Notes under the pieces: model-generated
The model's input: the letters and a program-made list of their open reading frames with translations, nothing else
Database searches by the model: none
Told to the model about the DNA's origin: nothing
Program-made: the position numbers and the translations under genes
Part shown: piece by piece, positions 4,694 to 52,024 of the stretch
Layout: each line of letters begins with the position of its first letter
How positions within the stretch are numbered: the first letter of the stretch is position 1
Source: Octopus sinensis
Taxonomy: Eukaryota
NCBI RefSeq assembly: GCF_006345805.1
Contig: NC_043003.1
Coordinates: 90,086,001-90,150,000, forward strand
Length of the DNA stretch: 64,000 nucleotides
Direction: 5' to 3'

Positions 4694-4915
4694 TTAACCC
4701 TTTTGATGCCAAATTTTCTGAGATCACCCACAATTCCATGATGCAAGCTTTTGTTTAAGTGATGTAAATACAAACTTTCCCCTCAAAATTTCATGTGAAT
4801 TCATGTTCCAAATACCAGCTTAATAAAACTAAAATATTTTATTAAGTTCTTCATGATTTTCAAAATTAATTGAAACAAAAGCAGTGTATTTCAACAGAAA
4901 TGTTAAAAGGTTTAA
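4694..4915. mobile_element. TTAA-flanked MITE (piggyBac-type ends), family 1
   Basis: Begins TTAACCCTTTT and ends AAAAGGTTTAA. Related copies near 27.5, 45.2-45.4, 60.4 and 61.2-61.4 kb. Confidence 0.7.
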
Positions 4916-4967
4916 CTCTTAGCATTCAGATTATTCAATCAAATCTAACACTTATTTATCCACATTG

Positions 4968-5700
4968 CCGGTGATACGTAAAAGCACCATTCGCTCATGG
5001 CCGTTTGCCAGCTCTGCCTGGCCCCGTGTCGGTGGCACGTAAAAGCACCATCCGTTCGTGTTCGTTGCCAGCCTCGCCTGGCCCCGTGCCGGTGACACGT
5101 AAAAGCACCGTCCGTTCGTGGCCGTTGGCCAGCTCTGTCTGGCCCCGTGTCGGTGGCACGTAAAAGCACCATCCGTTCGTGGCCGTTTGCCAGCTCTGTC
5201 TGGCCCCGTGTCGGTGGCACGTAAAAGCACCATCCGTCCGTGTCCGTTGCCAGCCTCGGCTGGCCCCCGTGCCGGTGACACGTAAAAGCACCATCCATTC
5301 GTGGCCGTTTGCCAGCTCTGTCTGGCCCCGTGTCGGTGGCACGTAAAAGCACCATCCGTCCGTGTCCGTTGCCAGCCTCGGCTGGCCCCCGTGCGGTGAC
5401 ACGTAAAAGCACCGTCCGCTCGTGGCCGTTGCCAGCTGTCTGGCAACCGTGTCGGTGGCACGTAAAAGCACCATCCGTTCGCGTCCGTTGCCAGCCTCGG
5501 CTGGCCCCCGTGCCGGTGACACGTAAAAGCACCGTCCGTTCGTGGCCGGTTGCCAGCTCTGTCTGGCCCCGTGTCGGTGGCACGTAAAAGCACCATCCGT
5601 TCGTGTCCGTTGCCAGCATCGCCTGGCCCCGTGCCGGTGACACGTAAAAGCACCATCCGTTCGTGGCCGTTCGCCAGCTCTGTCTGGCACCTGTGCAGGT
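4968..5700. repeat. GC-rich minisatellite, 12 units of about 60-61 bp, mostly alternating two variants
   Basis: Core GGTG(A/G)CACGTAAAAGCACC recurs about every 60 nt, followed alternately by GCCAGCTCTGTCTGGC or GCCAGCCTCG(C/G)CTGGC. Confidence 0.95.
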
Positions 5701-9050: not shown

Positions 9051-10389
9051 ACTTTTTATTTAAATTATTTAAAGGTCACTGGATATTTATTAACAAAATC
9101 AATTTGAGCAACCAACTACAAGTACAAAAAAATAAATAAACAAAAAAAAAACCCCAGAAGATGCTTAAAGCTCCTTCTTTACTGATATCATTGCCAGGAC
9201 TGACTGCTTTCATCTTCTAGGTTTCAATAAAATATAAACTAGCCATTAAACAAGATTAATTCAATTGACTATAAACTTCCTCAATGATTTGCGGGTTTTG
9301 TACTAAGGTAGGGATAAGTGTCAGAGGTTAGATGGTAAGAGTAATGAGATGGGTTGTGTAGGGAGGAGGAGTCTAAGCTTATCCTATGTTATAAGGGTGA
9401 GTGCAATGGAACTTTGGCTTATGAGTTAAATTTGTTCTCAAAGGCTATTTGTCATCTAAACTGTTCATAAACTGAAACTATGTTTCCTATAGGAAATTCA
9501 AGAGAAGGCATGGAGAATTCTGACAGGGGCATGCAGTGAGTGAAAGCTAAACACTGACATTCTCCTGGTGATATTGCCAGCTTGTTGCCAACCATAGTTG
9601 CCACCTTGCATGGTCATTACTTGAGACACCATTCATCACCCAGGATGTTTTATGTTAAAAAAACTGTAAATTGATTTGCTAGTGATGTGAGGTGTTCACA
9701 AAACTGAGGTCCCACAGTAAAGGTGGCAGGCATGAAGGCAAAAGGGAACATGGAAAAGAGAAAATAGACAAGGTGGTGATGATCCAGAGAGAGCCAATGA
9801 AAGCAAGGGATGGGCCTCATGCTGGGTAGACCAAAGTGACAAGATGGTATTAAGATAGAAGAGAAGCTTTGGAGAGGGGAACGGTGAGAGAAGTTGCAAA
9901 GCATCACATGTAGTAAGACAAGAGATATGGATAGTGATAGGATAATGATTGTGGGGGAGTGATGAGGATGAGAGATATGAACAATAGAGAGATGACTGAA
10001 GTGGGGGTAGAGGGATGGAAGAGGGAAGGTGGGTATCTATAGAATAATGATAGTGGACAGTCTCTCATACATAAGCCTAGCAAAAAATGGGGAGAGGTAG
10101 TGACAGAGTGGTATAGGGGCTAGCAATTTATAGTTTGTAAGCTTCACAAATGGTGGGGAGATAAGAGATGGTGGGTATGAGTGATAGAGGGATGAGAAGA
10201 TTGAAGTGAATAGGGAGGTGTGTGAAAAAAGGAAGGTGGTCAACAGGTAGAGGAGAGGGGTATAAATGATGGTAGTAAATATAGGGTGGGCAAGCTAATG
10301 ATGTATATATCCACACACATATAAACATATATATATACATGCATATACACACATACATGTAAGTATGTACACATAGATATCCCAACTTT

Positions 10390-11590
10390 TATCATTATCA
10401 TCATTTCAATGCACATTTCATCATGGTTGGTTGGATTTTCTGCAGCACTACTTATCTACTTATTGTCAATTAATACTGTCCTTTGTCAGCCCCGCCCTCC
10501 GTGAGATGCATCATCTTTGGGTCACCATTTATCACTTCATTCCATGTCTTCCTTGGTCTCCCTCTTCCATAGCTTACACTAACATGGAGCATATGGCACT
10601 TCCTTATGCAGCAGTCATCCTCCATACACACATCATATGACCATACCAACAGTCTTCTCTCTTGCACACTATACCCATTCTCCTTATACTCAATTTTTCT
10701 CACAGCTCATAATGCACACTGACATTATGCATCTATCAGTGCATGCTAGCTTCTTTGTCTTTGCAGGTCTTCTGTATTCAAAGCCCACATCTCACTACCA
10801 TACAGGAGTTCGAACACATGGATCATACAATCTGCCCTTTACTCTGGAGGAGAAAGCCTTTGTCACCAGCAGAGGTAATAACTCCCTGAACTTTTTCAGC
10901 TAATTCTTCCCTACAGTACTTTAAGAGCGACCACATTCACTGCTAATTATGTCACCTAGATGCCTGGCATTTAAGAGAATCAATTTCTAGCATGCACTTA
11001 ATGCTTATTGCTCCAGTGCATCTGTCACATTCAAAGTCTGCTTTCTTTGCTAACCTGCCTGTAATTCCATATCTCTTGTGCACCCATAGCTTACACTGAG
11101 TATAACATAGGGAGTTGCTCCTTTTCTGCATATCATGCAAGGCTGTTTCCTTGAGGGTGCAAGGAACCTATCTAAGCTAAGTTTATTTTGAGGTCTCTTC
11201 TTGCTATGTATTATTTGGAATTTCTTCAAATTCCTCTATACAGTCTTCCATAAAAGCATATAGAAGTCCCCACAGACATCCAGTTTTTAACTCTTTTGTT
11301 GGTGGCATACAGAAACATGATGAAAAGAAGGCGATTGAGGATTGAGCTATGAAGGACATTCAAATTTATTACTGAACTCATTACTGACTCTTACTTTACA
11401 AACTACATCTTTATACCAGCTTGCACAATCCTCGCATACCATTCATCTATGTCTAGTCTTTTTAGACATCACTAAATTACCAAGTATGGCACTTTGTCAA
11501 AGGCCTTCTGCAAGTCAATGAATGCTAGATATAATAGCTTGTTCTCAGCTAAGTACTTTCCCTGCAGTTGCCTAACTAGAAAGATGGTAT
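10390..11590 (-). mobile_element. Older RTE-clade LINE remnant (RT fragment and C-terminus)
   Basis: Minus frames read PGRGTTDTIFLVRQLQGKYLAENKLLYLAFIDLQKAFDKVP, CTQCKLWVHKR and YGRGRPRKTWNEV, with stops. Confidence 0.75.
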
Positions 11591-15309: not shown

Positions 15310-17240
15310 ATGCTACAAAGGTAAAGGTAACGCTTTAGATACAAATAATAACTGAGGCATCAAGTTGTTAGATCCGGTAATGAAGGTCACGGAGTGGGTT
15401 ATAGCCCAACTAATTAGGGAGAGAGTCAGCTTAGATGAGATGCAGGGAAAAGCACCATTGATGCTATATTTCTGGTAAGACAGCTGCAGGAGAAATACCT
15501 AGACAAAGATAAACCCCTGTACCTGGCTTCTGTTGACATGGAGAAAGCCTTTGACAGGGTCCCCCGATCCCTTATCTGGTGGTCAATGAGGAAACTAGGG
15601 ATAGTAAGGTGAGAGCTGGCAACGAGTACAGGGAAGAAATCCGGGTAGAGGTAGGGGTCCAACAAGGTTCAGTCCTCAACCCCTTCCTTTCGATCATAGT
15701 CCTCCAGGCAATAACAGAGGAATTCAAGACAGCATGCCCCCGGGAGCTCCTCTATGCTTATGACCTTGCTGTAATTGCTGAGTCACTATCAGAACTGGAG
15801 GAGAAGTTTCAGGTGTGGAAGCAAGGATTAGAATTGAAGGGCCTTAGCGTCAACCTAGCTAAAACCAAAGTCCTAAAAAGTAGGAAGGTAGACAAGTCAC
15901 AAATGCCTTCAGGTAGATGGCCCTGTTCGATCTGTAGAAAAGGCATAGGTAGAAACTCCATAAGATGTACCCAGTGTAAGCTATGGACACAAGAGGTGCA
16001 GCAATATCAAAGGAAGGCTAACTGGGAGGATAGTTTTTGTATGTGGCAGATGCTCTGGTGCTATAAATAACACTGAAAATGTCCAGAGACCAACTTCCGC
16101 CACATTCAAGGGAAAAAAACTAGAAGTAGTTGATAGCTTCCATTACCTAGGTGACCAAGTCAGTAGCGGGGGAGGGTGCACTGAAAGTGTAGCTGCTAGA
16201 ATAAGAATAGACTGGGCTAAGTTCAGAGAGCTCTAACCTCTGCTGGTGACAAAGGGCCTCTCACTCAGAGTAAAAGGTAGACTGTACGACACATGTGTAC
16301 AAACAGCCATGCTACATGGCAGTGAAACATGGGCCGTGACTGCTGAGGACATGCGTAAGCTTGCAAGGAATGAAGCCAGTATGATCCGATGGATGTGTAA
16401 TGTCAGTGTGCATACTCGACAGAGTGTTAGTGCCCTGAGAGAAAGGTTGAACCTAAGAAGCATCAGATGTGGTGTGCAAGAGAGACGATTGCGCTGGTAT
16501 GGTCATGTGGTGAGAATAGATGTTGATAGCTGTGTGAAAAAGTGCCACACCCTAGCAGTTGAGGGAACCTGTGGAAGAGGTAGACCCAGGAAGACCTGGG
16601 ATGAGGTGGTGAAGCATGACCTTCAAACATTGGGCCTCACCGAGGCAATGACTAGTGACCGAAACCTTAGGAAATATGCTGTATGTGAGAAGACCCGGCA
16701 AGCCAAGTGAGACCATAACGCGTGGCTTATGCCAGGGCTGTAACCAGCCCACTTATACGTACCTTTCCTTCATTGGACACTAAACTTTGCTTGAGGCAAG
16801 TGAAATCGAAATCGAATCAAATTCGATGACTGTCACCCATGCCAGTGGAGCGCTAAGAGTACCATCTGAGTGTGATCGTTGCCAGAGAAGCTGACTGGCT
16901 TCTGTGCTGGTGTCATGTAAAAATGCCGGTGGCACGTGAAAAAACATTTGAATGAGGTCATTGCCAGTGCCGCTGGACTGGCTCCTGTGCAGGTGGCACG
17001 TAAAAAACACCATTTGAGTGTGGGCGTTGCCAGTACCGCCTGGCTGGCCCTCATGCCAGTGGCACGTAAAAGCACCCACTACACTCTTGGAGTGGTTGGT
17101 GTTAGGAAGGGCATCCAGCTGTAGAAACTCTGCCAGATCAGATTGGAGCCTGGTGCAGCCATCTGGTTCGCCAGACTTCAGTCAAATCGTCCAACTCATG
17201 CTAGCATGGAAAGCGGACGTTAAACCATGATGATGATGAT
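15310..17240 (+). mobile_element. 5'-truncated RTE-clade LINE (RT, C-terminus and 3' UTR), disrupted
   Basis: DMEKAFDRVP, GVQQGSVLNP, LLYAYDL and GRGRPRKTWDEV motifs, (GAT)n tail. Closely similar to the copy at 49.7-52.0 kb. Confidence 0.9.
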
Positions 17241-18270: not shown

Positions 18271-19329
18271 AGAAGACAACAAAGCAAATCCTCTGTTCAG
18301 ATATATTTAGTAGAGGATTTTCAATAGCAACATCAAACCCATTTAGCTCAGTCATGTCAAACTATAAAACTGCCAATGGTACTTATCTCTTTTCCAGTAC
18401 GCTATTGCAAGATTGGATATTGTACTCAAGCTAATAAAATACTTGTTAATATTGTCATTATCATTGTTAAGGGTTATTTTTCCATGCTTGCATTGACAGA
18501 TCAGATGGAAATCATTGAGGTAGATTTTCTGTGGACAGATCCCCTTCCTGTCACCAACCTTCACCTGCTTCCAAGCAAGGTATTTTCTTATTCCTTGCTG
18601 AACATATCTCCATGGAAGATTGTAAATGAACATCACTTGTGTGACAGTGACACATGTTTACAACTACCACACAATGTCAAGATGAGAAGACACTCACACA
18701 CATTATACATTGTCTGGGCATACATGCTATACGCATATAAGTTGTGGACTGGCTATATGATTCATCTCTGATCCTGTTCAGGTATGTGATGTTGATAAGC
18801 CACAAAAATGGTGAAACATCAAGGTCTGTCACTCTTGGATGGGATTAGAGGCGAGTTATCTCACTTGTCCATTAATTTCAGGTGTTTTAACACCTGGCAC
18901 TTTGAGAGAGTGTTCTCCACCATGCCAAATCACATATGCAAATATTTGGAACATATATATTAAGTGCATGTGGTTGATAATATATATATCATATGACATA
19001 CTCTTTACTTTACATACACACGCATATATATGATGGGCTTCTTTCTGATTCTGGCTACCAAATCCATTCACAAGGCTTTGATCAATCCAGGGATATAGTA
19101 GAAGACGCTTACCCAAGGTGCCATGTAGGGAGACTGAATCTCAAGCTACATGGTTGGAAAGCAGACTTCTTAACCATACAGCCCTTGTATAATTAATCTT
19201 TATATCATTACTAGCATTATGACCCGTCGTTGCCAGGTCATAGTGCTAGTGCATGTATATATATATGTGTACATATTACATGTACATCTATATATATACA
19301 TCTACACATAAAATACAAAATTATATCTT

Positions 19330-19663
19330 GATATCGCTAGTGATAACAATACTCAAAATATATAACAGACTGGAATTGTTAGCCCGTCTCTTGCAATTTC
19401 GATCAATTGTATCTTGTGCTCCCTCTTGTATAGAAGCATGGCTACAATCCAGCCTACCTCAACTTCTAGGGGGGGGGGGGCATTAAAAATTTTTATCCAG
19501 CACGTCCCAGATATAAAGGTAAAAATAAAATATTTCCAATTTGCGAGTTCGAGTCGAGTACTCCCTTGCATGCTCCGTTGACTCGAACCTTGCTTCTATT
19601 GTGGCGAATTTACCGCCTCTGGTTAGATATCTTTCATATTTTCAATGGTGCTTTCCTCCAGGT
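19330..19663 (-). pseudogene. Unit C, 3' part: degenerate Tx1-type ORF1 (the target element)
   Basis: Frameshifted translation HLEESTIENMKDI/YLTRGGKFATIEARFESTEHAREYST/IGNILFLPLYLGR/WIKIFNAPPPLEVEVGWIVA is colinear with the ORF1s at 23300-24601 and 25068-26465. Confidence 0.8.
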
Positions 19664-19907
19664 TGTTTTATTATTACCCACTAGGGGCGAACATAGATGG
19701 GACAATACAATCTGATGTGGGGTCAGACACACGAATGGGTTTTTACAATAAATCGAATTTAAAAATTTACATGAAATTACAAAATAGACACAAAATCGAA
19801 TGATGGAACAGACCGTAAGACATTACGGGTGGAGTGGGTGCGGGTTTAGCTCGGACCCCACGAGCCCCGCCTCCCCACTGATACTTTTGGTTTCGTTTGG
19901 TTTACAT

Positions 19908-22900
19908 TTATGTTGTATCTTTCACTCGCAACTTACGTGCTACATCTTTCCATCGTTCTTCATACACTCTCCTAGTCAGGCATATTCTCTCCAGCCCTAT
20001 CTTCCTTTTCAGGTGAAAGATGAAATAATTCATCAAACCAGGGCCGGAGATGAACTTGCCTGACTGTAGACCTTTCATTCTCGTCTTCCATATCACCTCT
20101 TTCGCAATTGCTACTACAACGAGAAAACAAAACTTACCTTCTTTCGCGAGGAAATCCGGTGGGTCAATTTTTGTAATCGACTCAGTCGACAGCTGTACTC
20201 TTCGTGTACCTGACAACAGCTGTTCGGTATAAAACCACACCTCAGACACGTCCGGACAATGAACAATAGCGTGCGGGACGGTTTCCCTATCCCACCCGCA
20301 TCTTGGACATATCGGACTGTCTTGGCCTCCGTGCCTTGCGAGTTTATCCCGAACAGGTAGAGCTCCTCTGTAACATTGCTATGCCAGGGACTTCTGGAAG
20401 TTGTCCAGTGTCTTCGGCTTGAACGTACGTCAGAACAGACTGGCCAGCTGATTATCGTCGAGACCTAGGGCTTCTCCCAAGGTATCTTCACATTCCGCCT
20501 CTACCAACCCTCTATAGAAGAATGTGGTGGAACCCCCACTGCAGGTGTTACCCGAGCGACGGAATAGCAGGAGAGCCTTGCGACACTCCGTGTACCAAGT
20601 ACCAAGTTTCGATCTACGATTCAGCCAGGTTTCCCATCCACCGAAACTAGTGAACTTGGGAAACATCAGTTTTGCTAGCGAAGACCACACCCGTTCACCA
20701 TCCAGATAGAGCCACAGATGTCTTAACCTCAGCGCATGTCTGCGCATCATCAGCCAAGGCATCCCTAGCCCACCCTTTAACGGTTGTTGACAGCAAGTAG
20801 AGCGTTTCACAAGTGGTTTCCGGCCCTTCCACAAGAAGTAGAAGAGCTGTCTTTCCAACTTGATCAACCACGAATCAGGGCAAGGAACGACGGAAAGGCG
20901 GTAGGTGATAACCGATGCGATAAACACATTGGCCACCTCCGCCCTCCCTTTCAAGGATAGCCACCGCCAAGACCAGGTCTTGGCTACTGCAGCCACCTTG
21001 CTCGTTACCTCGCCCCAATTCTTCTCTATTTGGAGGTCTGGACCGAACCAGACCCCTAGCAATTTAATCGGACCCTCCGTCCAACGTCCCACGACGCTGT
21101 CAGGAGGCATCGACTTGCCTCTCCAGGTGCCGAGTTGCAAGCCGACTGACTTTTCGCGATTAACTTTTGCTCCTGTCACCGTCTCGTAAACCTCTATGGA
21201 CTTGCCTACTTTACATAGGTGGTCCATTTCGGTTACGATGATGGTGATGTCATCCGCGTACGCTGACACTGATTTTCCATTACCTGGCTGTCTCAGGATG
21301 CCGCTCAGTTTTCGCAGTAATGGCTCAAGAGCCATCACGTACAAAAGCGGGGAGAGCGGACACCCTTGACGAACCGAGCGTTTGATTTTGAACAGCTTCG
21401 ACAAGAAGCCGTTCACCCGAACTACCGAGTCGATGTTATCATAAATTTGGATAATCCACCTGAGGAAGCCAAGGCTCAGCCCGAACCGTGCCAGGGCAGA
21501 TACCAGGTAACGATGGTCGACCCTATCAAAAGCTTTAGATTGGTCTAAATGGACCAGTGCCCCACCCTTGCCAGAATCACTATTAAACCCCTCTATAGTG
21601 TACCGCATTAGATGGAGATTATCCTGAATGGATCTGCCCGGAACGGCACATGTCTGTGCCCCTCCGATCAGACCATCCGCGACACGCGCCAATCTTTTCG
21701 ATAACACTTTGGCCAAAATCTTCAACTCTGTGTTTAGCAGAGTGATGGGCCTGAAATTATCAATGCACTCCCCCTTGCTCGAGTCCTTTCTGACGAGAGT
21801 CACTACTCCCCGGTGCACAGATCTGGGTATAAGCCCGTTCTGCTGCCAGTTCGCATAGACCTCCGCCAGTAGGTGCCCGAACAAGTCTGGCATACTCTTA
21901 TATAACTCATAGGGTAGACCATCCAAACCCGGCGCCTTGCCCGCGCCGCAGTCCGCCATTGCCTCAACCACCTCCTCAGGCGTGATTGGCCCTTCACAGC
22001 CCTCCGCATCTCGCCCCGATAAGCGCGGCAGCCCGTCAAGAAGGTCCGTAAAGGCCCTCCTCCTATCCAGTCCGCCGCACTCACCGAAAAGCTGAGCGAA
22101 GTGCTCCTGAAAGGCCTCACACATCTCCTTGAGTTCGTTTATCAACTCACCTTGTTGGTTCGTCAAAGATCGAATCGTGGCATCGTTACCATGCTGTGCT
22201 TCCACCACTCGGGCCCATCTCACGGCGTTGATTCCTTCACATCCCATATGGCGGATTCTAGCCCTGACAATGCAGCCCATGTGTTTGGCCTCGAGGTGCT
22301 GGTTTAACACCAGTCTCTTGGACGCCACCTGAGCCGCAGAGCCAGTTTTCAAGGCTTCCTCTAATTCCTTAACTAGAGTAGTTTCCCTTCTAGCCTCTCT
22401 AGCCACTACTCCTATGCTATATCTAATTGACTCGAACCGATGGCTCGTTTGAGGGCGTACCACCATTTGTTATTAATGATGGTACCAGATAGTGCCCTCT
22501 GAATTATATCCCTAATCCGGTCTTTGTACTCCTTAATCGCCAAAAGGGACGTATTAAGTTTCCAGTAAGCGGATCCTCTATTTTTAACCTTATCTATGTC
22601 AAGCTTACAGGTGACCATTTTATGATCACTGTAGCTGATCGGGTAAAACTGTGGACACTTAGCTATTTTTCTGTCTACTTTTCTAATTAGTATTCTATCT
22701 AATTATGACCTGGAAGATCCGTCGCTGTTTGACCATGTCCACAATGGAGCGTTCGGAAATTCCAGCCTATAAGGATCTGCTAGCTCAAAGCGGCTTAACA
22801 GTTCCATGAAGCCACTGTTACCTTTTCTATCTGAACGCGAGCCAACACAATCTACATCCGCTTTGCAAATTGTGTTAAAGTCACCTAGCACAACTAATGA

Positions 22901-23290
22901 ATGCGAAGTACCAAGAAAGTTTTCTAGTTCACGAAAATAATCACTTTGCCCTGTATGGTTGAGTGCGTATATTGCAACCAGTCTGATAACTTTACCGTTA
23001 CTGAACGTCAAATCCATGACGACCAGCCTACCTTCTGGATCTGCAAAAATTAACTTTTTCTCAGAAACCCGGTTTCTTTTTATTAGGACCAACACCCCAC
23101 TTCCGCCAGGAGAGAAAAAACTCTCATAGCCGTCAAACAGTGGGAGTAGACCTCTTGGCCCCTCTAACCGGGTTTCTGTAGCAACAATAACATCTAAATT
23201 ACGCGACCTGATATCATGCAGGAAGCGACCTTGCTTCCAGCCTGCTCCCAGGCCGCGCACATTCAAACAACCAACATAAATGTAATCCAT
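19908..23290 (-). pseudogene. Unit B ORF2 (AP endonuclease, reverse transcriptase, C-terminal zinc finger) with three in-frame stops and one frameshift
   Basis: EN motifs LNVRG, TETR, LGDFN, (Y>*)LDRI and SDH. RT motifs NFRPITLLN, DQSKAFDRV, RQGCPLSP and AYADD. Finger CPRC..ETVPHAIVHC. Stops at 22703-22705, 20430-20432 and 20379-20381; frameshift near 22440. Confidence 0.92.
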
Positions 23291-23299
23291 TACTTACCT

Positions 23300-24601
23300 T
23301 TATATCAGTGGTTCAGTTTTCTCTTTTTCTTCTTTGTTTATCTCTTTTTCTGGGCCTCGTGGGGGAGTCTGATGTAGGCCCTCGAATATATATGGAGATG
23401 TTAAATCCATTCTGAGCGGGCCTACGTCATGAAAGAATTCGGACTTTATCCGCCCGTAATCCTTCCGGCCTATTCTGTAAACTATATAGTCATTCTTTTT
23501 TCCTATTCTTTCCACTTTGGCCATAGCTGCCAACACGTTCCCGAGTCTGTTGTTTGATGCCTTAACGGCCATATATGAGTTCATCGACTCTCTTTTCTTC
23601 TTTTGGATCACTCTTGGAGGGGTGGTTTCCGTTTTTCTTTTTTTTCTGGTGATTTTTGACCACCCCTCCTCATTGCTCTTTTTTTCCTCTGCCGCTGGTT
23701 CTGCTGCCTCTGTCACTTCCACACCTTCAGTTGTCTCTTCTGGGCCGCCCGGCGCTGCTTCTGGTGACACTTCATCTTCTTTTTCACCTGGCTGAGGTGC
23801 TTCCTGCGGTTTGGGTTGGGGTTGGCATTCCGCCCTTACATGACCCTTCTTGCCGCAGCCGAAGCACCTCGGCTTTCTGCCCTCTACGAAAACTGTTATT
23901 CTATCGTCTTCACTTATTTTTAGGGTTTCTGGAATCTCCTCCAGTGTTTGAATTTCTGCCTGAATGGCTATTACTATCCGCTGCCCTTTCCAAAATTCCT
24001 CCTCCTCTACTGTGGCCTGGAGGATGTTTATTTTTTCCTCTGGCGGAATGTTATTCATCGTGATTTTCGATGTTCTTTTTCCTCTATACAAGGGGAGGAG
24101 AACAATGTTCTCCGCTTTTATTGGCTCCATCGACAGTTTTTTTGCTATCTCCTCTGTTGTGAAACGCACCTCTACTGTGCCGTATCTCTTTTCTCTGTTG
24201 ATGTATGTGATCTTGTCCATTAATGGTTTTAAACAATTCTCGATTTTTTTTTCCTCAATTTTTTGTATCATTTTGGTTGTCGTATTAAAGGTCTTATAGA
24301 TTATTCTTCTTTTTTCGATTTCTTCATGTTTTTGGGCGTTTGAGACCACTGTCACTTCCGTGCCCTCTTTTGTAACACAGTCCGCATATTTTTCCAAGTC
24401 TTCGACGTTTATTTTTTTGATTTTCTTGCCAGCTACTTCTGAGAATTTTTTCGCTGGTGCTGGTGCTGGTGCAGGGGTTTCCTTTTTCTTTGGCGCCACC
24501 ACCTCTTTTTTCTTTGGCGACACCACCTCTTTTTTCTTTGGCAACACTGCCGGAGATTCTTCTTCACTAGTCACGGGAGAATATGAGATGGGGGATTCCA
24601 T
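23300..24601 (-). CDS. Unit B ORF1 (gag-like, one CCHC knuckle), 433 aa, open
   Basis: First ATG (MESPISY) at 24601; knuckle CFGCGKKGHVRAEC; TAA 9 nt before the ORF2 ATG. Confidence 0.85.
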   Translation of the reverse strand: MESPISYSPVTSEEESPAVLPKKKEVVSPKKKEVVAPKKKETPAPAPAPAKKFSEVAGKKIKKINVEDLEKYADCVTKEGTEVTVVSNAQKHEEIEKRRIIYKTFNTTTKMIQKIEEKKIENCLKPLMDKITYINREKRYGTVEVRFTTEEIAKKLSMEPIKAENIVLLPLYRGKRTSKITMNNIPPEEKINILQATVEEEEFWKGQRIVIAIQAEIQTLEEIPETLKISEDDRITVFVEGRKPRCFGCGKKGHVRAECQPQPKPQEAPQPGEKEDEVSPEAAPGGPEETTEGVEVTEAAEPAAEEKKSNEEGWSKITRKKRKTETTPPRVIQKKKRESMNSYMAVKASNNRLGNVLAAMAKVERIGKKNDYIVYRIGRKDYGRIKSEFFHDVGPLRMDLTSPYIFEGLHQTPPRGPEKEINKEEKEKTEPLI

Positions 24602-24828
24602 CTCGAACAACTGGCTTAACAAGCCCTTGGTAAATCCAAGATAAATGATATTTTTTCCCCCACGAAGGGGGGAACACCACCACGGAGTCCTCGCACGAAG
24701 GCTGACTTCAACAGTTGTACAACAATAAACAAAGACAGGTAGACACACAGTAGAATATAACGGAGAGAATAAATACGACGGCAAAATATAATAACTTACT
24801 ATACACGCAAATAGCTTTCCTCCAGGTG

Positions 24829-26595
24829 ATTTTATTACTACCCACAAGGGGCGAACATAGATGGGACAGTACAATCGGGGAACTTAAAATAAGAAAGCAA
24901 ATGACAAGAAAAGGAAAAAATAAAATAAAAAAATGACATATGAAAGAATATTTACAATGAGATGTAAATGCCCACTCGATCCCCGGAATCGAGAGGTTAC
25001 ATTTTCGTCACATATATTTCACAATATTTTCTTTTTTCTCTTCTTTCTTCTCTCTCTTCTCACAATTCTATACGTATTCCATAATAGTTTTCAATTCTCT
25101 AAAGTCAATCACTGAGCCCTCAGGCAGCCGCTCTCTCACTCGAACACTCGTGTAAAACGTTACACTCTCTCCGGCAGCTCTGAGGAACTCAGCGACTCTT
25201 TCTTCGGGGATTAGAGCAGTCTCCTGCCACTGATCAGTCATCCTGTTGACCCATATATGTCCCTCCGTATTACATGTCAATTCTTTCATTTCAGGGCAGA
25301 AATGGAAGGTTACTAACTTGTAGAAGCAGTAATCTTGTTTCCGTCCTACGTTTTCCCTCGTTTTTCTTTTCGGGCTTATTTCTTCCTTGTTCTCCTCTCT
25401 TTGTTTCTCTCTTTTTGCCTTCTTTTCTTTCTTCTTCCTTCTCTTGTCTTTTTGGTTCTTTGTCTGTTCTCTCTTTCTCTCGTGTTTTATGTTCCTTTTC
25501 TTTTTCTTTTTGTGTGCCGTCTTTTCTTTTCGTTTGATTCTGATCTCTCTCTTGTTTTTTTCCTGTTGTTTCTTTTTCCTTTTTTTTTCCTGACTCTGTT
25601 TTGGTTCTATTTCTTTCTTTTCTTTTATTTCTTTTTCCTTCATTGACTTATTATTTCCTTTCTCTTGTTGTTTTGTTTCCTTTTCTATGTTTTCTTTTTC
25701 ATTTACCGTATTCTTCTTTTCTTCAAGTTCCTGCTCGCACTCCGCTACAAATTCGTATAACGGGCACTCTTTTTTAATGTGCCCCCTTGTCCCGCACAAG
25801 TAGCAGTTTGGCTTTCTTCCCTCTACAATTACACTGAGGGTTTTCTCATCTTCAATTTCTATTCTGTAGGGGAACCTTTCAATGTCCTCTTTTGTGGCCA
25901 TCAAACACAGTTCTACCCCATATCCTCTCCAGTTTACCGCGTTGGACTCCTTAAAGGATTCCACCTCCACTTCCTCTTCTGCTGCTCCTAGAATAGCTGT
26001 TGCCAGCCATTCTGTTTTCACTTCTGGGGGTATATTCGGGATTTTAACCCGGACCCCTCTTCTTCCCTTGTATGAGGGCCACATTATAAATGTTTCCGCT
26101 CTTAGTACAGTGGTAGCCAGTGAGGCTGCAATTTCTTCCGTTGCACATCTCACCTCCACCGTACCAAATTTCTTGCCTCTACTCACGTAGGTCGATTTCC
26201 CCATTATGTCTCCCAGACATTTTTCGATTTCTGCTATCTCCACTCTTGCCAGTTTCTTTGTATTTTTGTCTTGGGTTCTATATGTTACAGTCTTGTTTTC
26301 TTTGTCCTCTTTTGCTTTCGCGGGGGGGATTAGCTTCACGCTATCACCCTCCCTTTTGAATAGCTTTTCATATTCTTTGAGTTTACTCTTCTCAAAGAAA
26401 ACATCCTTCACGATTATCGACGAATCATTATTTTTCTTTCCCGTGACCCCCGCGTAAGTCGCCATGACTAGAGGGTCAATTCACCTTCTTCGGAAGGTTT
26501 CCACACGTGGAGGCAAACGCCTCGCGCGATATTAATCACTTTACACAACAAAATTTCAACGTCTAATCACAGATAACAACACGTATAGCTTGGAG
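24829..26595 (-). mobile_element. Unit A: 1767-nt ORF1-only (half-LINE/HAL1-like) Tx1-type element
   Basis: About 130-nt 5' UTR, one ORF, about 240-nt 3' UTR ending in the same tail as unit B, no EN or RT sequence. Flanked by CACCTGG at 26596-26602 and 24822-24828. Confidence 0.8.
25068..26465 (-). CDS. Unit A ORF1 (gag-like, CCHC knuckle, Lys/Glu-rich tail), 465 aa, open
   Basis: Knuckle CYLCGTRGHIKKEC. YVSRGKKFGTVEVR and VIVEGRKPNC align with B ORF1 YINREKRYGTVEVR and VFVEGRKPRC. Confidence 0.88.
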   Translation of the reverse strand: MATYAGVTGKKNNDSSIIVKDVFFEKSKLKEYEKLFKREGDSVKLIPPAKAKEDKENKTVTYRTQDKNTKKLARVEIAEIEKCLGDIMGKSTYVSRGKKFGTVEVRCATEEIAASLATTVLRAETFIMWPSYKGRRGVRVKIPNIPPEVKTEWLATAILGAAEEEVEVESFKESNAVNWRGYGVELCLMATKEDIERFPYRIEIEDEKTLSVIVEGRKPNCYLCGTRGHIKKECPLYEFVAECEQELEEKKNTVNEKENIEKETKQQEKGNNKSMKEKEIKEKKEIEPKQSQEKKRKKKQQEKNKREIRIKRKEKTAHKKKKKRNIKHERKREQTKNQKDKRRKKKEKKAKREKQREENKEEISPKRKTRENVGRKQDYCFYKLVTFHFCPEMKELTCNTEGHIWVNRMTDQWQETALIPEERVAEFLRAAGESVTFYTSVRVRERLPEGSVIDFRELKTIMEYV

Positions 26596-26760
26596 CCAGG
26601 TGTTCAAATCTTCTTTTTTCTCTACATTGTATACTTTATAGACAATAGTCTTTTCTTCAATTTAATTTTTTATTATCCATCTGGACTATTCCATTTCTGC
26701 ACGCTAATTTTATTTTTAATTTATTCCCATTCATGTGAAACCACTTATTCAAGTTCAAGT
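26596..26760 (-). pseudogene. Unit C, 5' part: upstream half of the split ORF1
   Basis: Translates IEEKTIVYKVYNVEKK, then (with a 1-nt indel in an A run) RRFEHL, which continues into EESTIEN at 19660. Colinear with B IEKRRIIYKTFNTTTKMIQKIEEKKIEN. Confidence 0.75.
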
Positions 26761-26924
26761 CATTGATGCAATTTTATACCAATTGCTATTTTTACTTTTG
26801 TTATGTCAAGATTTACTTATTATATTATACTTTAGTTTGATTTTAATTATTACTTACTACATATACTTCAATTGTTATTATTATCTCTAATTTTTATTGT
26901 TAAAGTGAAAGTATCTGACATAAA

Positions 26925-27150
26925 ATAGAGAAATGTTTTTGTTTCACTTTTAACACATAATACTGAAATAGTGGAGAAGATATGATATTGCTATGGGCTC
27001 GCTCTAGGCAAGAAGTTGAACATTTTTTTTGCCCATGAAACTACATGGACCCTAAGTAAGGCATGTGTAAAATTTGAATGAAATTGGTTGAGTAGTTCTC
27101 AAGTTTTAGGGAAACAGACAGACACACATTCTCAGTTTTATATATAGAGA
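26925..27150 (+). mobile_element. Non-autonomous Helitron/Helentron-like repeat
   Basis: Ends in CAGACAGACACACATTCTCAGTTTTATATATATAGAG, similar to the tails at 63180 and 63840. Confidence 0.45.
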
Positions 27151-28079
27151 GATTTATCATTACTGAAAGTGGTATGTTGGTAGAAACATCTTGCAGCATT
27201 TTTGTCTTGAGTACATTCTTTGTTGAAGTGTACAACAAAGATAAACTAATTACCAGTAATATGTTGTATTCAATTGAATTAGCAACATGACTGAAATCCT
27301 TTCAGAACAGAATCACAACTAAGTTATTTTTAAAATATATATGCCTGTAATTTACTAAAACAAAGCATAAATCTGATAGTGTTTCAACCTAGAAATCATA
27401 TATAGATTCAGAGTTATATAACAGGTTTCTTTTTTATTGCGTATAAAGTGTTTTATTTTAGAGATTGCGAAAATGGAATATTGTGGCATTCTATTTCAAG
27501 TTATGAGAGCTGTAACCTTTTTGATACCAACCCACCTGAGACTGCTCCTGGTTCTTTGTCACAAACTTCCTCTTTTAATATGATCTAAATTAAAACATTA
27601 CATCAAATAACATTTTGGGCTAATTTATGTGCCAAACATTACTTTAACCCTTTAGCACTCAGATTACTTTGTCAAATGTAATGCTTATTTATTCAGATTT
27701 TAAAAAATCAATCTTGTATTACCTTGTAGCTTTGAAATTTCAAAGATGCGATTATTTTTAGAATGACATTGCAGGGTAGGTGTGGGAAGCTAGATCTGGC
27801 CAGTTTGGAAGTAAAAATGATAGACTGGATGTGGTCTGTTTAAATATATTTTTTTCAAATTCTATATTATTTTCATAATGCAAACAAAGGTAGTGTTTTA
27901 CAACAAAATGGTACAAATAATAAATGAAGTCAAATAGCTCTGACCAGCACTCAAACTCATATCACATATTTAACTAGCCAGGAATTTATTTCTTACTCTT
28001 TAGTGCTCACTATACACCGTGAACGTATATTTCATGTATTTGGTGATTTGTCTGAAGTTGAAAAAGGAAGGATTTGGAA

Positions 28080-49727: not shown

Positions 49728-52024
49728 CAAGACAGTGTGTGAGAGAGAATCGTGATGTGGTAGGAGAGAAATGTGTTCGCATGGATGATGGCTCACTTGC
49801 GCTAAATGAGGATGCAAAGAGAGAGGCTTGGAAACGCCACTATGAAAGGTTGCTGAATAAAGAAAATGAATGGGATAAAGAGAGTCTGCCAAATGTTGAC
49901 CCAACAGAGGGACCAGCTATCAAAGTTGACAGTTCCTTGGTAGTTAAGGCAATTAGAAGCATGAAGACAGGGAAAGCTCAGGCCCATCAGGAATCACTGC
50001 AGAGATGCTCAAAATATCTGGTAGTGTCGGCTATAGCCTAGTCATCTGTATAGTTAATCAGGTGATACACGAAGAAGTCATACCCAATTACTGGTGTAGC
50101 AGCATAATAGTCAACTGCTACAAAGGTAAAGGTGATGCCCTAGATACAAATAATTACAGAGGTATCAAGCTGTTGGATCAGGTAATGAAGGTTACGGAGA
50201 GGGTCATAGCCCAACTAATTAGAGAGACAGAGTTAGTTTAGATGAGATGCAGTTTGGGTTCATGCCAGGGAAGAGTACTACTGATGCTATATTCCTGGTA
50301 AGGCAGCTGCAGGAGAAATACCTAGCCAAAAATGAGCCCCTGTACCTGGCTTTCATTTACATGGAGAAAGCCTTCGACAGGGTCCCCCGATCCCTTATCT
50401 AGTGGTCAATGAGGAAACTAGGGATAGATGAATGGTTAGTCAGAGCTGTGCAAGCCATGTACAGAGACGCTGCTAGTAAGGTGAGGGTTGGCAACGAGTA
50501 CAGGGAAGAATTCAGGGTAGAGGTAGGGGTCCATGAAGGTTCAGTCCTCAGCCCCCTCCTATTTATCATAGTCCTCCAGGCAATAACGGAGGAATTCAAG
50601 ACAGGATGCCCCTGGGAGCTCTTCTGTGCTGATGACCTTGCTCTAATTGCTGAGTCACTATCAGAACTGGAGGAGAAGTTTCAGGTGTGGAAGCAAGGAT
50701 TAAAATTGAAGGGCCTTAGAGTCAACCTAGCTAAAACCAAAGTCCTAATAAGTAGGAAAGTAGACAAATCACAAACGCCTTAAGGTAGATGGCCCTGCTC
50801 AATCTGTAGAAAAGGCAGAGGTAGAAACTCTATAAGATGTACCATGTGTAAGCTATGGACACATAAGAGGTGCAGCAATATTAAAGGAGGGCTAACTAGG
50901 AAGATAGTTTTTGTATGTGGCAGATGCTCAGGAGCAATAAACACTGAAAATGCTCTGAGACCAACTTCCACCACATTCCAGGGAGAAAAACTAGAAATAG
51001 TTGATAGCTTCCATTACCTAGGTGACCAAGTCAGTAGTGGGGGCGGGTGTGCTGAAAGTGTAACTGCTAGAGTAAGAATAGCTTGAGCAAAGTTCAGAGA
51101 GCTCTTACCTCTGCTGGTAACAAAAGGCCTCTCGTTCAGAGTAAAAGGCAGACTGTATGATGCATGTGTATGAATGGCCATGCTACATGGCAGTGAAACA
51201 TGGACCGTGACAGCTGAGGATATGCGTAAGCTTGCAAGAAATGAAGCCAGTATGCTCCGATGGATGTGTAATGTCAGTGTTCATACTTGACAGAGTGTAA
51301 GTACCTTGAGAGAAAAGTTGGACCTAAGAAGCATCAGTTGTGGTGTGCAAGAGAGATGTTTGTGCTGGAATGGTCATGTGGCGAGAATGGATGAAGATAA
51401 TTGTGTGAAAAAGTGCCACACCCTAGCGGTTGAGGGAACCTGTGGAAGAGGCAGATCCAGGAAAACCTGGGACGAGGTGGCGAAGCACGACCTTCAAACT
51501 TTAGGTCTCACCGAGGAAATGATTAGAGACAGACCTTTGGAATTATGCTGTGCGTGAGAAGACCCGGTAGGAAAAGTGAGACCATAACCCGTGGCCTCTA
51601 CCTGGGAGGTAACCAGTCCACTTATGCATACCTTTCCTTCTTGGGACACAAAACTCTACTTGTGAAGACCTGTTGAGGCAAGTGAAAATCAAGATCGATC
51701 AACATCAATGGAAACTGCCGGTGGTACGTAAGAGAACCATCTGAATGTGGCCGTTGCCAGTGCCACGACTGGCCTCATGCCGGTGGCATGTAAAAAGCAC
51801 CATCCGATCATGGCCGTTTGCCAGCCTCGTCTGGCACCTGTGCTGGTGGCATGTAAAAAGCACCCACTACACTCACGGAGTGGTTGGCGTTAGGAAGGGC
51901 ATCCAGCCGTAGAAACATTGCCAGATCAGACTGGGCCTGGTGCAGCCTTCTGGCTTCCCGGACCCCAGTTGAACCACCCAAACCATGCTAGCATGAAAAG
52001 CGGGTGCTAAACGATAATGATGAT
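49728..52024 (+). mobile_element. 5'-truncated RTE-clade LINE (RT, C-terminus, 3' UTR), disrupted, antisense in the phosphoesterase intron
   Basis: NYRGIKLL, MEKAFDRVP, GVHEGSVLSP and FCADD motifs with several stops; (GAT)n-like tail. Confidence 0.92.

Follow-up and report, generated by a model that had tools for sequence, protein, structure and literature searches.

Elements of the Tx1 clade of long interspersed nuclear elements (LINEs) are often target-specific, and the targets reported for them include U2, U5 and 5S genes, microsatellites, the piggyBac-type Tx1D, Mariner-N4_AMi, Harbinger and specific long terminal repeat (LTR) retrotransposons (PMC4494074). Two of these systems appear, by analogy, to be the closest precedents for the locus described here. 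Tx1L, a LINE of the L1 superfamily with an apurinic/apyrimidinic-type (APE) endonuclease, occupies one defined site in the multicopy Tx1D of Xenopus laevis (PMC4494074). In crocodilians, Tx1-Mar and the short interspersed element (SINE) SINEU-3 share a target in Mariner-N4_AMi with a 16-bp target-site duplication (TSD) (Kojima 2015, PMC4494074), and tandem SINEU-3 copies sandwiching the TSD have been explained by sequential insertion (PMC4494074). The present locus lies in a 64-kb stretch of Octopus sinensis DNA (contig NC_043003.1, positions 90,086,001 to 90,150,000; the window, numbered from its first letter), in which two retrotransposons, A and B, are inserted at the same site of a third sequence, C. 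We propose, with a probability of about 0.78, that A and B belong to a target-specific L1/Tx1-type group which homes into C as a harmless multicopy landing pad and builds arrays by regenerating its own target site.

Like Tx1L in Tx1D, the octopus elements are found at a defined site inside another multicopy transposable element, forming a composite with target duplications. The Tx1D host is a non-autonomous piggyBac DNA transposon, however, whereas C is a LINE-derived element that holds a remnant of a first open reading frame (ORF1) and is related to its invaders; the octopus system also has an ORF1-only partner and long mixed arrays, and its elements are labelled L1/Tx1-type by their domains, including that of the reverse transcriptase (RT). 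As with Tx1-Mar and SINEU-3, an autonomous element and a non-autonomous partner share one target in a transposon, in tandems that sandwich the TSD. In that case, however, the partner is a SINE headed by small nuclear RNA sequence and the target is a DNA transposon, whereas the octopus partner is a 1.8-kb ORF1-coding element, and the octopus arrays, unlike those of Tx1-Mar and SINEU-3, reach at least eight units of mixed subfamilies.

Anatomy of the insertion site

Direct reading of the minus strand from 27400 to 18800 gave the order C5'-CACCTGG-A-CACCTGGAGGAAAGC-B-ACCTGGAGGAAAGC-C3', so that the preliminary description of this DNA, which had placed two elements at one site within 1 nt and in this order, held to the base. 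The features, all on the minus strand and given in the order in which that strand is read, are as follows.

26603-27143, minus: 5' part of C, an AT-rich leader and the start of the ORF1 remnant (...NGNKLKIKLACRNG..IEEKTIVYKVYNVEKK..), with homology to the array flanks at other loci
26596-26602, minus: target copy 1, CACCTGG, following on from the ...GATTTGAA of C5' and forming the upstream half of the duplication around A
24829-26595, minus: element A, 1,767 bp, non-autonomous, with ORF1 but no ORF2, beginning with the 8-mer CTCCAAGC
25068-26465, minus: ORF1 of A, 465 codons, open, with an RRM-like N-terminal half, a CCHC knuckle, a lysine/glutamate-rich (K/E-rich) tract and a C-terminal domain
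24829-24876, minus: 3' tail of A, about 48 nt (...GATTGTACTGTCCCATCTATGTTCGCCCCTTGTGGGTAGTAATAAAAT), the same as in B at 44 of 48 positions
24814-24828, minus: target copy 2, CACCTGGAGGAAAGC, between A and B
19664-24813, minus: element B, a 5,150-bp full-length but defective L1/Tx1-type LINE with ORF1, APE endonuclease, RT and zf-RVT
23300-24601, minus: ORF1 of B, 433 codons, open, with in-frame deletions of 24, 45 and 12 nt with respect to its relatives
19908-23290, minus: ORF2 of B, broken (APE endonuclease, RT and zf-RVT, by Pfam domains)
19650-19663, minus: target copy 3, ACCTGGAGGAAAGC, native C sequence coding for (H)LEES and a perfect 14-bp duplication with copy 2
19199-19649, minus: 3' part of C, in which the ORF1 remnant continues (..YLTRGGKFATIEARF..PPLEVEVGWIVAMLL..) and is followed by a TA-rich stretch and the 3' end of C itself (...GACCTGGCAACGACGGGTCATAATGCTAGTA...)

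The C5' part terminates in ...GATTTGAA CACCTGG (or, written otherwise, ...GAAGATTTGAA-CACCTGG), with CACCTGG at 26602-26596, and C3' begins with ACCATTGAAAA at 19649. The 3' junctions of A (AAAAT/CACCTGG) and B (AAAACA/ACCTGG) are offset by 1 nt. The exact 14-mer of the target occurs twice in the window, both times at these junctions; with up to two mismatches allowed, 0.24 matches would be expected in the window, and three or more were reached in 0 of 100 shuffles. The duplications previously given as 7 bp for A and 14 bp for B were read at the junctions, with the addition that the 7 bp of A continue into the 8-mer CTCCAAGC (26595-26588), which lies in the same register as the remainder of the 15-bp target and replaces the AGGAAAGC of the native sequence. 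This 8-mer may be a donor-derived 5' extension or a local variant of the target.

Arrays in C and the nature of the landing pad

Other loci were found with a profile of the ORF1 N-terminal domain, which detected near-identical A- and B-type ORF1 proteins in O. vulgaris and O. sinensis. The resulting sample of five arrays, namely the window and four A-anchored O. vulgaris loci, was reached through annotated A-type ORF1 proteins and is not a genome-wide census. The four additional loci are laid out as follows.

L009 (OX597816): C5'-A-B-C3', the layout seen in the window
L008 (OX597820): at least eight A copies, a full B, ACATGGAGGAAAGC and C3'
L007 (OX597814): C5', three A copies and a truncated B
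L010 (OX597833): C5' followed by A2-A-A2-B', A2 being a 71% relative of A

The preliminary description had made its case for a specific target depend on the flanks of other A and B copies, and at all four retrieved loci these flanks are C, in the same orientation. The common architecture is C5'-(A)n-B-C3', head-to-tail, with n from 1 to at least 8; the window is the n = 1 case of a recurrent arrangement and not a double insertion without parallel. Of the two ends of C, the 5' part borders the arrays of the window, L007, L009 and L010, and the 3' part those of the window, L008 and L009. In four of the five arrays the insertion is at the identical nucleotide of C. In L010 a second site about 300 nt downstream (GCTAA^CAATTCCAGTCT) is used, in a C copy that is without the stretch between the two sites; its spacer, CATTCCAGTCTTCA, is this other native C segment (a score reached by 0 of 2,000 shuffles), and its duplication consists of 13-14-bp repeats of the same segment. 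Elsewhere the duplications of the local target are 14 bp and perfect (window B), 14 bp with one mismatch (L008 B) and 15 bp and perfect (L009 A), and every copy has a precise 3' junction.

Spacers of 13-16 nt lie between one element and the next and read CACCTGGAGGAAAGC in the window, CACGTGTCTGAAATC in L007 and CACATCGAGGAAATT with variants in L008. They vary between loci and recur within one locus, and the copy next to C3' is native C sequence; target copy 3 of the window is homologous to the ACATGGAGGAAAGC found at the B/C3' junctions of both L008 and L009. It had been considered that the 14-15-mer might be a constant part of every element terminus. This was rejected, because it varies by locus, equals the local C and has a native copy at C3', and it is therefore the target. 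As an observation on its own, CTCCAAGC stands directly before A in the window (26588-26595) and before both A and B in L009 (about 9300-9307 and 11090-11097), so that the sister A copy there has the same 8-mer at its 5' end.

Kojima (PMC4494074) takes the presence of a given target in >20% of flanks as the criterion for target specificity; here, in a small sample of five, independent copies share target and orientation and, in four of the five arrays, position. As judged from these sequence comparisons, target-specific homing into a related element is supported.

Several observations bear on whether the insertions are independent. Outside C, no flank homology was found between the loci or with the window beyond dispersed repeats; for this reason orthology or segmental duplication was rejected as the relation between the window and L009. 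A copies of different subfamilies occur within one array (L007; L010). In L007 the copy that adjoins C5' shares 98.0-98.6% identity with the L008 copies and only 92.4% with its two neighbours; these agree with each other at 99.4%, have identical junctions and are most like the L010 copy. The window A is 91-98% identical to the main-family A copies of L007-L010 (by the MAFFT matrix, 93.0-98.2%). Comparison of the loci gives 80-92% identity for the first 2 kb of B and 94-96% for the adjoining C5', and between the window and L009 the values are 98.2% for A, 91.5% for C3' and 94.3% for B. In L008 the 5' junctions of the A copies vary from copy to copy. The unrelated flanks, the mixed A subfamilies and the greater divergence of B than of the C flanks indicate repeated integration by different subfamilies rather than duplication of one composite, and local duplication appears to have contributed in places, as with copies 2 and 3 of L007.

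The landing pad itself extends over some 1.0-1.2 kb. The preliminary description had located it correctly but had made its interval too small: the window copy runs from about 27143 to 26596 and from 19663 to 19199. Its C5' part is 94-96% identical (gaps excluded) to the 5' array flanks of L007, L009 and L010, the homology beginning at ...ATATAAAACTGAGAATGTG in all four loci with unrelated flanks farther out, and its C3' part is 88-92% identical to C3' of L008 and L009, the homology stopping at one point in all three. The A and B proteins did not detect C in a tblastn search of the window, and the window copy alone has only weak colinear similarity to ORF1. The paralogous copies in L008 and L009, which retain 15 nt lost from the window copy and read ...RRFEHMEESTFEKCLGASMKGI / YLIRGGKFATIEARF... 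/ ...PPPEVEVGWIVATLL, make the relationship much clearer. When the two C flanks of L009 were joined into an empty site and translated with correction of the frameshift, the product matched the ORF1 of A (E = 3e-12) and the B-type ORF1 P0121 (E = 1e-12), and both alignments are continuous over the insertion point, covering FEHMEES; the duplicated CTGGAGGAAAGC codes for LEES, the homologous residues of B being IEEK. On these alignments the middle of C is an ORF1 remnant with the insertion site inside it, and the colinearity with A and B that had been reported for the rejoined sequence stands.

All C copies share the same in-frame stop and the same frameshift, have no ORF2 and end in a 3' sequence unlike the tail of A and B; C is therefore a non-coding, non-autonomous relative. 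A database search with a profile built in part on the conceptual C peptide gave no C-type protein, and hence no coding parent of C was identified. The target had been described as coding sequence of a related retroelement; it is indeed ORF1-derived and related, but C was already non-coding when hit. Because of this, C was not an obvious competitor, and the suggestion of a parasitism that inactivates one is not upheld for a sequence of about 1 kb with no ORF2, a common stop and frameshift and a different 3' tail. The alternative offered in the same description, a multicopy safe harbour, fits better.

Two further observations concern C. Directly upstream of the array-bearing C of L007 lies a 129-bp inverted, 5'-truncated copy of the C 3' end (L007:8436-8563; 98% identical to L009), and, since such truncation is the usual signature of retrotransposition, C appears to retrotranspose through its own 3' end. 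In addition, (TA)n or TA-rich sequence flanks C at both ends in L009 (8550-8640 and 16790-16860) and at the 5' end in L010 (6780-6870), the corresponding borders of the window copy being at 27143-27160 and 19185-19199; C may itself be an element that targets (TA)n microsatellites.

Two more head-to-tail arrays of B-like elements were seen, in O. sinensis (L005:1-20850, CM016867) and in O. vulgaris (L006:4440-19184, OX597840), with the spacers CAACTGAATACTCGTCA and CCCGAYAGGACG. A segment of 23 nt from the target in L005 (CTGAACTTTCACCAACTGAATAC) recurs at 21 of 23 positions inside the 5' untranslated region (UTR) of a neighbouring element, either because another sister-element target is in use or because a flanking target was captured into the 5' UTR.

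The partner elements and the choice of target

The ORF2 of B matches, in order, the Pfam families Exo_endo_phos (E = 1.6e-9, N-terminal), RVT_1 (7.9e-31) and zf-RVT (6.3e-7, in the C-terminal piece), and human LINE-1 ORF2p is the best match of its RT among solved structures (7e-49, compared with 1e-23 for R2). The APE endonuclease before the RT, the C-terminal zinc-binding domain and the CCHC-bearing ORF1, whose motif CFGCGKKGHVRAEC aligns with the CCHC of the A ORF1, are features of the L1 superfamily, and on these predicted domains and the structure match A and B are classed as L1/Tx1-type non-LTR elements, as had already been suggested. The window copy of B is broken by stops at 22703-22705 (premature), 20430-20432 and 20379-20381 and by a 1-nt deletion near 22439, and near 23108 it has also lost 12 nt with no change of frame. 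Compared from end to end, it shares 92-94% identity with the B copies of L008, L009 and L005. Open B-type ORF2s of 1,130 codons in L009 and 1,132 codons in L006, where ORF1 is also open, provide a source of enzyme.

Exact look-ups of the window A ORF1 and B RT proteins found no identical record. The closest RT relatives, in Argonauta hians (L001) and in a second assembly (L002), are only about 60% identical in protein; the first has a different tail and no common target, and the second ends within the 3' UTR. In the A. hians locus (L001:10017-10650, BAAFZT010000001) the relative is followed by a 135-bp gap and then by a 5'-truncated second copy of its own 3' UTR, and the tail motif GGCCCTTGTGGCTAATAAAGAAAT found there is related to the octopus tails. 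The RT coding sequence of B in the window holds CACCTGGAGAGGCAA (21115-21129, minus strand), the first nine nucleotides of which are those of the target CACCTGGAGGAAAGC; no insertion at this site was seen in any copy examined.

The ORF1 of A contains a zf-CCHC (Pfam, E = 1.3e-4), its RRM-like label having been assigned by eye, and is 35% identical to the ORF1 of B over 206 amino acids (E = 4e-40). Its identity with P0122, P0124 and P0126-P0129 of O. vulgaris is 98-100%, which assigns the window to that species or to one very closely related. The sole nucleotide similarity between A and B is the 3' tail of about 48 nt, whose motif GCCCCTTGTGGGTA is kept in all relatives. Because the similarity is limited in this way, A is not a deletion derivative of B but a separate ORF1-only lineage carrying the B tail. 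The HAL1 ('half-L1') elements of mammals have likewise kept ORF1 and lost ORF2, and are presumed to use ORF2p in trans; A differs in not being a deletion derivative, with an ORF1 only about 35% identical to that of B and only the 3' tail in common. As expected of a non-autonomous partner, A has no RT, shares its tail with B and uses the same target site, and most likely it is copied in trans by a B-type ORF2p through the common tail. The K/E-rich tract of the window A ORF1 (25300-25650) is in another frame than in P0122 and P0127-P0129, the common frame resuming at ...KQREENKEE; this is a compensated double frameshift, and P0124 uses the frame of the window for much of the tract.

We suggest the following mechanism. 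Target-primed reverse transcription would take place at a defined position in C, with a bottom-strand nick at ...TTTGAA^CAC(C/A)TGGAGGAAAGC and a top-strand cut 7-15 bp downstream. B-type elements would supply ORF1p and ORF2p, the latter with its APE endonuclease, RT and zinc-binding tail, and A-type elements, consisting of ORF1 and the B tail, would be copied by the same ORF2p in trans. Each integration would duplicate, and thereby regenerate, the site, so that the arrays could grow by the head-to-tail stacking of later copies into C5'-T-(A-T)n-B-T-C3' (T being the target), with C serving as a multicopy and harmless landing pad and not as a competitor to be knocked out. With moderate confidence we think that B probably inserted first and A later, because B takes the last place on the 3' side in every array, the A subfamily of youngest appearance in L007 is the one beside C5', and B is the more decayed of the two in the window; new copies would then go into the spacer that is still preceded by C5'.

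A number of points weigh against this proposal. It is built on only five arrays, for all of which annotated A-type ORF1 proteins were the point of entry, and among these A-anchored arrays there was no empty copy of C. The target is loosely conserved: from locus to locus as many as 5 of 15 spacer positions vary, and a second site is used in one array. The core common to the used sites is little more than AA^CA plus a loose context, and with so short a sequence the endonuclease could not by itself account for homing to C. The constant 3'-most position of B needs either an upstream-context requirement or a shared history. Relatives of B, namely the B-type copies of L005 (with an endonuclease 92% identical in protein) and the B-like family of L006, occur in arrays with other spacers, so that specificity would be labile or not purely enzyme-encoded. 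Finally, for the trans-mobilization of A by B the one line of evidence is the shared tail, in which a hairpin of three predicted pairs has essentially no covariation among the tails of relatives and is thus unsupported.

Homing might also be achieved mainly by nucleic-acid homology, with transcripts that begin in the adjacent spacer, or run on into it, annealing to nicked C, or with gene conversion between C copies; the enzyme would then need an AA^CA-like nick only. The very short conserved core over all sites is in keeping with this, as are spacers that are chimeric and drift stepwise along the arrays, the fact that at two loci CTCCAAGC precedes sister A copies in register with the 3' half of the target, and the 23 nt of L005 target sequence that recur within the 5' UTR of a neighbouring family as if carried along. 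Read-through or upstream-initiated RNAs are, however, a supposition, an Rfam scan of the region found no known ribozyme or other RNA family (only sub-threshold matches to TA repeats), and the precision of the 3' junctions at every copy weighs against it. Moreover, such guidance would be a variant of target-specific integration and not an alternative to it. As the main explanation we consider it doubtful, but since part of the donor spacer seems to travel with the RNA, as CTCCAAGC suggests, a homology-assisted step is a live variant. Such a step has been proposed for R1 (R1Bm) and R2 (discussed in PMC4494074).

A bolder extension would be that a whole group of octopus Tx1-like LINEs is specialized in homing into sister-LINE-derived sequences, guided largely by the target carried on their own RNA, the examples being the ORF1 remnant C in O. 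vulgaris and the 5'-UTR-like segment of another family in O. sinensis. We think this unlikely; if true, specificity would be re-programmable by RNA and the arrays would be self-renewing landing pads.

The elements might instead have arrived by a single chance double insertion, the composite C5'-A-B-C3' then being copied as a unit, whether through segmental duplication or as a C transcript that retrotransposed with its passengers, and its copy number being changed by unequal crossing-over. The other loci would in that case not count as independent support for site specificity. The order of (A)n and then B is constant in all arrays, the homology between loci stops exactly at the C termini as if these bounded a mobile unit, the odd variant CTCCAAGC is common to the window and L009, and the two nearly identical A copies of L007, with their identical junctions, fit local duplication. 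A copied unit would not, however, account for the uneven divergence of its parts, which are uncorrelated between loci (A being 90-99% identical, against the values given above for C5' and the 5' part of B), for different A subfamilies within one array, for the heterogeneous A2-A-A2-B' array of L010 or for the copy-to-copy variation of the 5' junctions in L008, and it would still need two insertions within 1 nt at least once. We therefore regard this account as very improbable. Least credible of all is that there is no specificity for C, the elements inserting beside their own resident copies at tail-plus-spacer junctions or in TA-rich heterochromatin, with C an accidental first landing: the relatives in L005 and L006 do form arrays with other spacers, and the spacers follow a ...AATAAAAT or ...AAAACA tail resembling the native ...TTTGAA left context, but five separate arrays each begin or end in C, four of them at the same nucleotide, and in the window and L009 no resident tail comes before A, which directly abuts C5'.

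Setting, other precedents and meaning

The remainder of the window is AT-rich, with many tRNA-like SINE copies and TA/CA microsatellites. One tRNA-like octopus SINE lies immediately 3' of C (19050-19190, minus strand), and its relatives are scattered across the window and the fetched loci. Further repeat families, unrelated to the insertions described here, are a tandem array of about 61-bp repeats (4900-5700, 16844-16885 and 51719-51823), a dispersed repeat of >650 bp in three copies (15602-16368 and 50474-51239, direct and 89-92% identical; 1820-2472, inverted and 77%) and a weak RT-like match at 50262-50669.

Beyond the two closest precedents, the Tx1 families Kibi, Koshi, Keno, Mutsu and Dewa are specific for microsatellites or RNA genes (Kojima & Fujiwara 2004, as presented in PMC4494074). 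In the account given there they share with the octopus elements the integration into multicopy 'safe' sequences, and the (TA)n around C at two loci hints at a microsatellite-type habit, but their targets are host repeats or genes whereas the octopus target is a related retrotransposon. Double insertions at one site are known to seed tandem arrays of transposable elements (McGurk & Barbash, 10.1101/158386 / PMC5932611); those arrays resemble the present ones in consisting of head-to-tail dimers from same-site integration, expandable by unequal exchange, although they come from a Drosophila population survey in which the site-specific elements are mainly of the ribosomal DNA and telomere types. 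For O. vulgaris, a repeat annotation (2026) lists 13 recently active L1-Tx1 families (PMC13282606), and the searched passages of that paper report no analysis of their targets.

Because the targeting of other transposons by Tx1-clade elements is already established, nothing is overturned by these results. What is new here is the host phylum, the class of target, namely a LINE-derived relative entered within its ORF1 remnant, the partner that has ORF1 alone, and arrays of such length and mixed composition. In the literature searched, this would be the first worked cephalopod example of target-specific L1/Tx1-type elements, and also the first in which such elements use a related LINE-derived landing pad. 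A site that regenerates itself would turn single insertions into arrays of at least eight units and would thus offer a route from transposon to tandem repeat. In addition, the autonomous element, its ORF1-only partner and their target would form a natural trio for the study of site choice by APE-type LINEs, with a bearing on RNA-templated targeted insertion.

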